From Auanema rhodensis (Eukaryota; Animalia; Nematoda): 64,000 nucleotides of DNA. Positions 58,581 to 64,000 of this stretch are shown here, piece after piece. The DNA is taken from NCBI GenBank assembly GCA_964057225.1, contig OZ059896.1:9672001-9736000 (forward strand), in the 5' to 3' direction. The stretch's first letter is position 1, and every line of letters begins with the position of its first letter. Position numbers and translations under genes: made by a program. The notes under the pieces were generated by a model. The model searched no databases, was not told the origin of the DNA, and saw only the letters and a list, made by a program, of their open reading frames with translations.

Positions 58581-59021
58581 GCAAAACGTTGATTTATTGT
58601 ATTATTTTCATAATCAGGATACATTTCTCAATATAAGAATGCATAATTTTTCAAAATATTGAGGACAAATCTCTTAAACTTATTCATAGTCGAAGAATTT
58701 TTTAGTTATGTATTAGTTAATGACGTTATACTGAATACTCACAATATTACTTTTTAAGAAAGAAGAAACTCTTTTTCTTTTATTTTGATTTTATAATGTT
58801 TCATCGTTATGCAAAGAAATAATTTAATATATCTTATTTCCTTGTCCATGTCAGTTATATGTATCATTCATTAAGTCAGCATTGTATAATATTATTAACT
58901 TTTTTTCTGTGATAACTTTTAATGAACACTGTGGGAAAACATCTGCTATGCATCAATGAACTATTCATATTATTAATCTTTTCCCCATACGATGCATTTG
59001 ATGAATATAAATAATCATAAT

Positions 59022-59179
59022 AAGTCTACATGGCTTGGATATTTTCGTGATCTTGGAACCGAATGTCTACGGAGAGGCTTGATCATTGCACTTTTGATTG
59101 GACTGACCTGTAAGGTAGCTGCGAGTTGAGGTTCGCCTAGAGCTAAAGTTTTGCGTGGGGATGCGTACGCGCATCACTG
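59022..59179 (+). ncRNA. U1: Variant U1 snRNA (divergent 5' end)
   Basis: Colinear with U1 over 158 nt: helix H GCTT/GAGC, SL1 with GATC loop, SL2 with U1A loop ATTGCAC and CTGACC, SL3 with the nematode GAGTTGAG motif, Sm-like AAAGTTTTG, SL4 GATGCG-TACG-CGCATC, 3' CTG. Confidence 0.92.
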
Positions 59180-59403
59180 TTACTTTGATGTAAGCTCGAT
59201 ATTTGAAATGTTGTTTTGTATTCATACGGTGTCTGCTTCGTGTGAAGATTAATGATCTAGAGTTGCAAAACATAGAAACCTTTATTGCACTGTACAGCGT
59301 CAGATATTTAGAATTTTACAATTAAATATGAAATTTGAAACAAAGTGTTTTACGAATCTTCTTCCTGCGGAAGATATTCTTGGGAAGATCAAATATATTA
59401 GTT

Positions 59404-59880
59404 TTAATGGCACTTCATGGCTGAGATATGTAAAACTCCTTTGTGATCAATATTGCTTTTCAAAGTTCCAACGTTAACGTCCTTGGGCAGCTGATAGCAT
59501 CTGTGAAACATCCGAAATTTTTAGAAAATGGGTAGTGACGAGATACCTTGTAATGCTACGAGAGGTCAAAGGTCCGGCTTGATGTCCCTTCATTGCTTTG
59601 TGCTCCAAATGAATCTCAACCAGATCACCAACAGTCTTGACCTACATCATAATCATTTTGACTAAGATCTATGATATCTCATGCGTTGACCTACCTCAAT
59701 TTCGTTTGGAGCGAATGGTTTAGCATCTAAACCAACTTCAAAATGCTCCTCATCTTCCATTAACTATAAGAAATCATGTAATATCAAACTTCAATGATCG
59801 ATGCTTACAGTAACAAACTCGTCATTGTGTTGAAGGGGCCAGTCCCACATCTTGTTCTCATGCACATTTCTAGTTTCCAT
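59404..59880 (-). CDS. hsp-12: 12-kDa small heat-shock protein (alpha-crystallin domain), HSP-12 family
   Basis: WDWPLQHNDEFV, FEVGLDAKPFAPNEIEVK, SRSITRCYQLPKDV...LKSNID.KGVLHISA; 4 exons. Confidence 0.93.
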
Positions 59881-62098
59881 TTTCACTGAAATTGTAAGAA
59901 AATTGATAAAAGTTAAGAAAAATATTTTATTGGAAAGAAAAAAAATTTTATTCAGAGCTAAATTAAAGTTTAAAGTAGCAAAAAAAAACTTCTTAAGTTA
60001 TCTGAGGATGAATTGCCTTTATATACAGACCCAATGTGTTGACGAAATAACTCTTGTTTGTTTTCCAAGACAATCACAAGGATAAGTACAGCATCATTTT
60101 GAGTGACATATGCTGAAGAAATATATTTAGCTTCTACTAGAAGAACAGATGATCGCAATTTTAAGTCAACCCATGCCTCAAGATGTGCACAGCTTGCAAG
60201 ATAATATTGTGAGAAAATATGTACTCCGGATTTTACGAGTTGAAGTTCTTCAATGAGAGTTCATATATCCATCACGTGCAATCTGTTTTCTAAAAAAAAT
60301 ATAAAATATTTCAAATACTCATTGAGCAGATGAATTTGAAGATAGTCATCTGTGGAAGATATACATGTTGTGCTCAATTTTGCAAAGCCCGATGAATAGA
60401 ATTCTTACTTTGAGTATATGAACTTGAACTTCAATACCTGATGAGGGAACAAAATATTCAATGATCTGAGCCCTAATTTCAAATACAAATACTAATAGTA
60501 AATGTTAAAATTTTAATATTTCATTCATTAATTGATAATAAATATTTCAAATACAATAAATATGTCATTTTTTATAAGATATATATACGTGCTGTATCAT
60601 ATATTTGATAATAATTCAGTTGTAACTTCAAATTATATATAAATAAATTTTATAAATATATAGTATGTACAATTTGAATTAGAATTTATTGTAGTTTTAT
60701 CATATATTTGATATACTATATTTCATATTTACACAATATTGATTACAAGTATATTTCAAATTCTTACATTCAATCCTCGTTTATTACATATTTTGAGTTT
60801 CGTTTATAAATATACTAGTTTATCTTTATCTTTATTGCATTAAATCCGTTGATGTTATGCTATACTGATGATTCTTCATCTTGGATTCGATATTTATCAT
60901 AGTTCAAATGAACTGTTACATGTACTTTGAAACTTTGTTCTGAATTTCTATCTTCTTATGTCAGAATATATAGATTTATATATTCTTCCACGTGTATAAG
61001 GATTGCGTAGACTAATGGGGGTTGACATGGAAAGCACATTGGGGACGAGGCAGTACGGTTTTGACCTTTTCCTTGACTTCTCAGCATCCTCCCACCCCAA
61101 ATCTGATGGTCACCTTTTCCCGTTTTTCTTATTCTCTCTGCGTAGTTACAACGCGAAACGTTGTCTGCTTTGCAAACCTTAGCGCAGTTTTTCGGAATAA
61201 TCATTCTATCAACCATATACCTCCGAGTAAGACCTCGCAATTCGCTCGAACTTCCACGTGGAAATGTATTTATAAACGGTCTCATCTATCCCCTCTTTCT
61301 CTGCGCTCTGCCGTTAATGTTTCTACTTCCCTCAGTTATTCTTTGTTGAAAAACCAAAATCGATACAATTTTCTAGTACAATAGGTCTGTAGTTTTGAAT
61401 ATATTTCACCAATGTTTGCTAAATTATTTATTTTTATCGGAATCTTTAGTTTTATTTTTGAACAACAGTTCACGGTTGAGAATTAAGCTAAAAGTTTAAT
61501 GCTCCAGACCTGATGAACTTCCTGGTTGTGAGTTTGTTCATCAGTGTTCAGTATGTGTGTAAAACCATGTTGGATCACTAGACTTATGATCACTAAACTT
61601 GTCGTTACTGAACAGCACATGCTCGGAGTAGTAATAGATATCGCAAGCGCTGAAAATCCATTTTAAACCATTTCTTCGTTTCTACTACATATAATAATCT
61701 TAAAAATGAGGCAAAGGCGAAGAATTGAAATTAGAGGCCAAATTCCTATGTTATCTGTTTGTATTTGACCTTCTCCTCGCTTTTTACAGTTTCTTTTTGT
61801 TACTCTTTTAGATTTTATGTTCTTGCACATTCAGAATATATCATTTTGCTTTTCTTTCCAGTGTGGCCTCCTTATCGCCGACTATCATTTCTTTTCTTTT
61901 TCTTATCTTCATGTTGATTTTCTTCTTGTTTTATGCCATCCAATGTTTCGCAAGTCGGTTGTGGCGGCGCCGGCGGCATTCTCCAGAATGTTCTGTTTCA
62001 CAGTTCGCTGCCTTCTTCTTTTTTCCTCGCGCATTTTCTATTTTTGATATTATATTATCAACTATTTAAGGTAATATACAAAAACTCGAATACTCAAA

Positions 62099-64000
<1,902 letters not shown>

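Follow-up and report, generated by a model that had tools for sequence, protein, structure and literature searches.

Our analyses establish that the window, that is, the whole 64-kb stretch of DNA under study (positions 9672001–9736000 of the contig labelled C4 in a 181-Mb nematode genome assembly), carries a full-length U1-like sequence of 160 nt at 59022–59181 on the + strand, an orphan and divergent copy that adds to the U1 variants and pseudogenes already known. Either it or the sequences from which it directly descends were under selection for the U1 fold through much of the divergence. On balance, we favour the reading that it is a once-functional divergent U1 paralog that has lost its promoter and now decays as a relic; the order of events and the present silence of the copy are what we infer.

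The body of the copy is defined by an Rfam match and by alignment to the canonical U1 copies of the genome. In a permissive Rfam scan of 58800–59400, U1 (RF00003) matched over model positions 1–166 with 59.1 bits (E 3.7e-14), which bears out the claim of the sequence-only reading that a complete U1-shaped sequence lies here. Since this score is below the RF00003 gathering score of 69.5, the copy falls short of what is expected of a working U1 gene and is missing from the default scan, which at gathering scores reported nothing in the 64-kb window. The canonical U1 genes number well over 100 and score 102–116 bits; the majority are arranged in tandem, with a 727-bp unit, on contig C3 (15.86–16.12 Mb), and five dispersed copies lie on C3 and C7. 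The window copy differs from each canonical U1 by 35–41 substitutions (40–46 differing columns when gaps are counted), and a BLAST search of the genome with it returned the copy itself and then canonical copies at 79–84 % identity. A genome search with an SL2-loop pattern (up to three mismatches) gave the five dispersed canonical copies and the window copy, and none of the seven most U1-like further matches was U1 when checked with Rfam. Among the best genome candidates scored, BLAST, the SL2-loop pattern and Rfam revealed no second variant U1 copy, weaker relics possibly existing besides; the copy is a singleton and lies on another contig than the working U1 genes (C3 and C7).

Alignment of the copy with seven distinct canonical copies gives a consensus structure that is identical with or without the variant included, and 41 of the 45 pairs of this structure, comprising the four-way junction fold (helix H and stem-loops SL1–SL3) and SL4, can still form. 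In helix H, the 5' strand GCUU (59033–59036, +) pairs with GAGC (59140–59143), and the last pair is U·G where canonical copies have G–C, both sides having changed (alignment columns 15/121). Stem-loop 1 (59037–59068, +) carries two more double changes specific to the copy, 19/45 (G–C to U·G) and 27/38 (C–G to U–A), and the doubles 18/46 and 22/43, which, like 23/42 and 100/112, are common to one or another canonical paralog; it still pairs, either over nine of ten pairs with a mismatch at 25/40 or with a shifted 4-bp apex. At the base of stem-loop 3 (59113–59138, +), a U–A pair has been flipped to A–U by a genuine double change (94/119), two C–G pairs have become U·G and one pair is broken (U–A to G–A), while in stem-loop 4 (59157–59178, +) one U·G is improved to U–A and one G–C is broken to G–A. 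The compensation that the sequence-only reading had proposed for helix H, SL1 and the base of SL3 is found in the alignment, as is the pair-keeping change of U·G to U–A in SL4, but it fails for stem-loop 2 (59069–59111, +), where the two copy-specific changes in 44 columns are single ones on adjacent stem pairs, C–G to U·G and C–G to C–A, the second of which breaks its pair. Over the whole molecule, the one-sided changes that preserve a pair are three of C–G to U·G and one of U·G to U–A, and four pairs are broken (25/40, 58/83, 102/110 and 142/159), one in each of SL1–SL4.

Measured against each single canonical copy, 6–8 doubles are kept where about one is expected (0.5–1.3 over both schemes; P ≤ 0.0006), and four pairs are broken where 35–41 random substitutions would break 14–16. 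With a generous ancestor, for which any state found in any canonical copy was counted as ancestral and the 27 substitutions left were placed at random, four kept doubles are still observed against 0.54 expected (P(≥4) ~0.001) and four broken pairs against 9–11 (P(≤4) 0.002–0.016). It is this excess of kept doubles, together with the deficit of broken pairs, from which we conclude that the lineage experienced structural selection in the past; moreover, at least 15/121 and 27/38 were derived on the U1-like copy's own branch, because at both of them the canonical state is the Rfam consensus. The broader claim that the stem changes are compensatory and not random decay therefore stands as regards the excess of doubles and the scarcity of broken pairs, but it had extended to SL2 and had left unmentioned the four broken pairs, as well as the losses of folding energy and of the promoter described below.

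A similar pairing record would be left by an expressed, functional variant U1-type snRNA resembling the human vU1 genes, in which the four-way fold and the U1A loop were kept and the 5' end was altered, and this is the alternative that survives best, although we give it clearly less credence than the relic. It would account for the excess of compensated stem changes and the few broken pairs, for the two or more double changes derived in the window copy, for the conservation of SL2 and its loop, and for the full length with A7–C8, which read the GU, retained; human cells, furthermore, transcribe variant U1 genes whose 5' ends are altered (PMC3561869, PMC10870369). In a weaker form, the copy could possibly yield a low-abundance U1-like RNP with another role, for example in binding the U1A/U2B'' protein. 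We argue against the expressed variant from the state of the protein-binding motifs, the folding energy, the promoter and the copy number.

Considering first the motifs, the 5' end of the copy (AAGUCUACAUG, 59022–59032, +; canonical recognition sequence AAACUUACCUG) is changed at 4 of 11 positions. As had been read from the sequence, positions 3, 4, 5 and 9 differ and A7–C8 are kept, exactly so in the alignment to the seven distinct canonical copies. All 11 distinct canonical U1 sequence types seen begin AAACTTACCTGG, and in place of ACUUACCUG, with which the 5' end of a working U1 can pair to the consensus donor, the copy reads GUCUACAUG. The SL1 loop (59049–59057) is GAUCUUGGA in place of the GAUCAnnAAG which binds U1-70K in this genome, one base being deleted and four substituted specifically in the variant over 10 loop columns, so that half of the loop differs. 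In the Sm site (AAAGUUUUG, 59145–59153, +; canonical AAAUUUUUG), the run of uridines has G at its first position; the AAUUUUUG of the site is invariant across all canonical paralogs, and in place of the pattern A-U(4-6)-G, present as AUUUUUG in every one of them, the copy has AGUUUUG. Only the U1A-bound loop of SL2, AUUGCAC (59085–59091), is intact and identical to canonical. A U1 snRNP needs the U1-70K loop as well as the Sm site in order to engage donors. Since both are altered here, it appears doubtful that an RNA from this copy would bind donors with the assistance of U1-70K and U1C or would assemble an Sm core.

The folding energies point in the same direction. The U1 cloverleaf has an energy of -19.5 kcal/mol in the U1-like copy and of -57 to -63 kcal/mol in canonical copies, two thirds of the stability having been lost, and its pairs include 16 G–C and 13 G·U (canonical copies, 26–28 G–C and 6–10 G·U). 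The copy's minimum-energy fold differs from the cloverleaf, and of 200 shuffled sequences 196 fold at least equally well (z +1.72), as compared with a z-score of -4.27 for the minimum-energy fold of the dispersed canonical copy L002. A cloverleaf of one third the canonical stability, like the altered U1-70K loop and Sm site and the occurrence as a single copy, counts against an expressed variant.

Binding of SNAPc to the PSE is required for transcription of snRNA genes (PMC9652321; for C. elegans, PMC7884074). In this genome, a 17-nt PSE (CACnCRTAnnARRTACG) starts at -58 to -56 in five U1 and two U2 genes at independent loci and scores 13–26 bits when each is left out in turn, the model having been built on U1 and U2 genes only. 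No such element lies upstream of the U1-like copy: scores at the canonical position are at most -11.9 bits, and the highest found in the 300 nt of upstream sequence, -5.6 bits, is reached by 1.5 % of window positions. In place of a SNAPc-type promoter with a PSE ~57 nt upstream of +1, there is what appears to be a PSE relic (58982–58998, +), beginning TCCCCATACG as against canonical CACCCATAnCAGATACG, in which ~7 internal bases are missing and which lies 9–17 nt too near +1; its remnant letters are TCCCCA-TACG at 58982–58991. The absence of a PSE at every position and the misspacing of the relic weigh against expression, a diverged promoter outside the recognisable form of the PSE being a possible objection to the relic. 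A 7-bp inverted repeat (ATGCATC at 58948–58954 and GATGCAT at 58991–58997) flanks the PSE relic and is the source of a chance-level snoR26 match (E 0.9); an upstream snoRNA was rejected, as the Rfam matches to snoR26 and Afu_328 (E 0.9–2.2) are without boxes and due to chance. Downstream of the canonical genes, no clear shared motif that could serve as a 3' box was found.

The RNA data consist of three small runs of the same species, available as contigs and by their look from mRNA-type libraries. They cover the 3' end of the Srb gene (to ~58695), the spliced hsp-12 mRNA (59280–59891, minus strand) and IDH, and in these three tiny mRNA-like runs no contig covers 58774–59279 and hence the copy, which is a further point against an expressed variant but weak evidence, because snRNAs are lost from mRNA libraries and the lack of a contig does not prove that a transcript is absent. 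As a precedent for expression, the human genes are of limited force: most endogenous vU1s amount to <0.001% of U1, and even when the RNU1-1 promoter drives them, few of them support splicing (PMC10870369). Defective snRNAs are reported to be eliminated by quality control (PMC13573567).

The rate pattern bears on both alternatives to the relic. Divergence is uneven, with 16 changes in the first 48 columns and 13 in the other 113 (P=0.0016); SL2, with 2 changes in 44 columns, evolved below the rate of the remainder (P=0.005); and in the single-stranded motifs critical for function, namely the 5' end, the SL1 loop and the Sm site, which are invariant in the canonical paralogs, 10 of 30 positions are changed, compared with 19 of 131 in the remainder of the molecule (P=0.03). 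Judged by the uncompensated stem changes, neutral divergence is only ~10%, whereas 9 of the 21 positions of the 5' end and SL1 loop are changed. One possibility, which would speak for a functional shift, is that these two elements diverged at a time when selection still acted on the stems; another is that the neighbouring changes at positions 3–5 and in loop columns 32–38 go back to a few multi-base events. Changes from G/C to A/T number 15 and those from A/T to G/C number 7, in flanks of 24–34% G+C. Two observations stand against the relic: the near-untouched SL2 and the lack of any large indel are not predicted by uniform neutral decay, and the changes of the 5' end and SL1 loop cluster beyond the ~10% neutral divergence.

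An unlikely alternative is that the copy was dead on arrival and has since decayed neutrally. In that case, it would be the working U1 genes that underwent the compensatory changes once the two lineages had separated, and the kept middle would stem from partial gene conversion by a canonical copy. The working paralogs do differ from one another by compensated SL1 and SL3 pairs, such that 18/46, 22/43, 23/42 and 100/112 need not be derived in the copy, and the uneven divergence (16/48 columns against 13/113) would fit a converted segment. However, four compensated doubles remain after all states shared with any canonical copy have been credited to the ancestor (P ~0.001), the canonical state of 15/121 and 27/38 is the pan-eukaryotic Rfam consensus, so that the change occurred on the copy's branch, the doubles 15/121 and 94/119 each have one partner within the part supposed to be converted, and four broken pairs are far from the 14–16 expected for 35–41 random substitutions. 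Neutral decay would have left an even rate and no regard for pairing, and the copy displays neither; therefore it can be placed among snRNA pseudogenes only if its death was late and secondary.

The strong form of the expressed variant, in which the RNA pairs with CAU|GUAGAC-like donors and extends donor recognition, is improbable, and we attach correspondingly little credence to a second donor-recognition code. The predicted donor CATGTAGAC occurs 9 times in the 64-kb window against 10.4 expected, so that there is no enrichment, which speaks against this variant but says little either way. The proposal of the sequence-only reading that a working U1 reads a second class of donors is not supported, in view of the missing PSE, the -19.5 kcal/mol cloverleaf, the altered U1-70K loop and Sm site, the singleton status, the lack of an RNA contig over the copy and the unenriched donor word in the window. 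Least probable of all is transcription of the copy from a promoter that escapes recognition, giving rise to an Sm-class U1-like particle whose rewritten 5' end selects non-consensus CAU|GUAGAC or YRU|GURGRY donors, as a second RNA-encoded donor specificity in the major spliceosome of a nematode.

Returning to the relic, we considered its origin. Retroposition was rejected, since the copy lacks both an A-rich or poly(A) tail and, on its flanks, direct repeats of the kind left as a target-site duplication. Similarity of the upstream region to that of L002 (on C7) is weak, with 23 of 1000 shuffles scoring equally, and states of SL1, SL3 and SL4 in the U1-like copy are common to the same dispersed copy. 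Considering the missing poly(A) tail and target-site duplication, the few recognisable flank bases together with the PSE relic, and the states common to L002, the sequence indicates a probable origin by DNA-level duplication that included the promoter, and not by retroposition. In keeping with a DNA-level snRNA pseudogene, the copy combines U1 homology with a lost promoter and damaged conserved motifs, and has neither a poly(A) tail nor a target-site duplication.

We suggest the following course of events for the relic. A U1 gene would have been duplicated at the DNA level onto a chromosome-scale contig different from that of the working U1 genes, and the orphan copy would thereby have escaped homogenisation with them. 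For a considerable period it may have been transcribed as a structured U1-type RNA, with its stems kept by compensatory changes, until its SNAPc-type promoter was lost through a deletion inside the PSE and a shortening of the spacing. The present state would then be one of decay, apparent in one broken pair per stem-loop, in the shift from G–C to G·U, in a drift towards A+T and in the damage to the Sm site, the U1-70K loop and the 5' end. As an outcome, the copy would be expected to form no stable snRNP and to have no present role in splicing.

Set beside known systems, the copy resembles canonical U1 (RF00003) of the same genome in its length, in the layout of helix H, SL1–SL3, Sm site and SL4, in the identical SL2 loop and in 84% identity across its 3' two thirds, and differs from it in the 4/11 changes of the 5' end, the half-changed SL1 loop, the G for the first U of the Sm site, the four broken pairs, a cloverleaf of -19.5 versus ~-60 kcal/mol, the lack of a PSE, a score of 59 versus 102–116 bits and its existence as a single copy on another contig. 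With the human vU1 genes (O'Reilly et al. 2013, PMC3561869; Wong et al. 2024, PMC10870369) it has in common that these are imperfect U1 paralogs, once deemed pseudogenes, some of which have an altered 5' splice-site recognition sequence; those vU1s counted as genes are, however, transcribed, capped and assembled into snRNPs, whereas the window copy is known from sequence and its promoter element is broken. DNA-level U1 pseudogenes (of the class I type, as distinct from retro-pseudogenes) share with it full-length homology, scattered substitutions, a lost promoter and the lack of a poly(A) tail or target-site duplication, but the clear compensatory stem record of the window copy is unexpected for a copy dead from birth.

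Taken as a relic, the copy is what turnover in an snRNA gene family ordinarily leaves behind, and at the same time a worked example of how compensatory stem changes prove the past selection of a lineage and not present function. If it is expressed, it would be the first nematode variant U1 with a re-targeted 5' end to be described, and would offer a natural test of whether donor choice diversifies via U1 paralogs, a question that is open even for the human vU1 genes.

As to the snRNA genes of this genome more generally, they are massively tandemly amplified. Every 727-bp unit of the U1 arrays (loci L006–L030, C3 15.86–16.12 Mb) carries U1 and tRNA-Asp(GTC), an snRNA gene of Pol II having been amplified together with a tRNA gene of Pol III as a single cassette, and there are U2 arrays with ~2.46-kb spacing and U5 arrays with ~370-bp spacing (C1 10.95–11.28 Mb and C8 10.43–10.53 Mb). 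The dispersed canonical U1 genes L004 (C3, 6.03 Mb) and L001 (6.15 Mb) lie 117 kb apart in opposite orientation and have near-identical upstream regions, and an open frame of collagen-like Gly-X-Y repeats adjoins L004.

The neighbours of the U1-like copy named in the earlier reading, an Srb GPCR and hsp-12, were borne out by weak matches of exon pieces to the Srb/Sra serpentine receptor and HSP20 families and by a small heat-shock protein mRNA among the RNA contigs. This hsp-12-like mRNA (59280–59891, minus strand), recognised by spliced RNA contigs, an HSP20 exon match and its translation, is convergent with the U1-like copy, the mRNA 3' end at 59280 lying 99 nt from that of the copy. In run X2 only, an hsp-12 mRNA contig has two extra upstream exons (59885–60017 and 60112–60177, minus strand), and the introns that join them have GC donors (AAG|GCAATT and GAG|GCATGG), the joints being flagged 'between: not known'.

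The IDH exon of the window is most similar to strongylid proteins (87% for Ostertagia, 80% for Cylicostephanus, these being the best named matches), no protein fragment exceeding 87% identity, and the coding exons have ~69–84% DNA identity to Ancylostoma caninum. The A. caninum contig with IDH and the conserved 5' exon was examined for an orthologue of the locus, and neither hsp-12 nor a U1-like sequence was found over the 5 kb that precede this exon. In the window, IDH has a non-coding first exon (62080–62154) that is spliced over 855 nt to 63010 and has 83% DNA identity to A. caninum sequence that precedes the IDH coding exons by 4.7 kb (L093:5212–5276), an unusually high conservation for a 5' UTR exon. 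Finally, the large first intron of A. caninum IDH contains a long near-perfect hairpin of CATGGGTGTGCATGGGTTTTGCA-like units (L093:6001–6137, contig JOJR01001015.1), which gives weak matches to miRNA families (E 0.002–0.01) and is probably a repeat.
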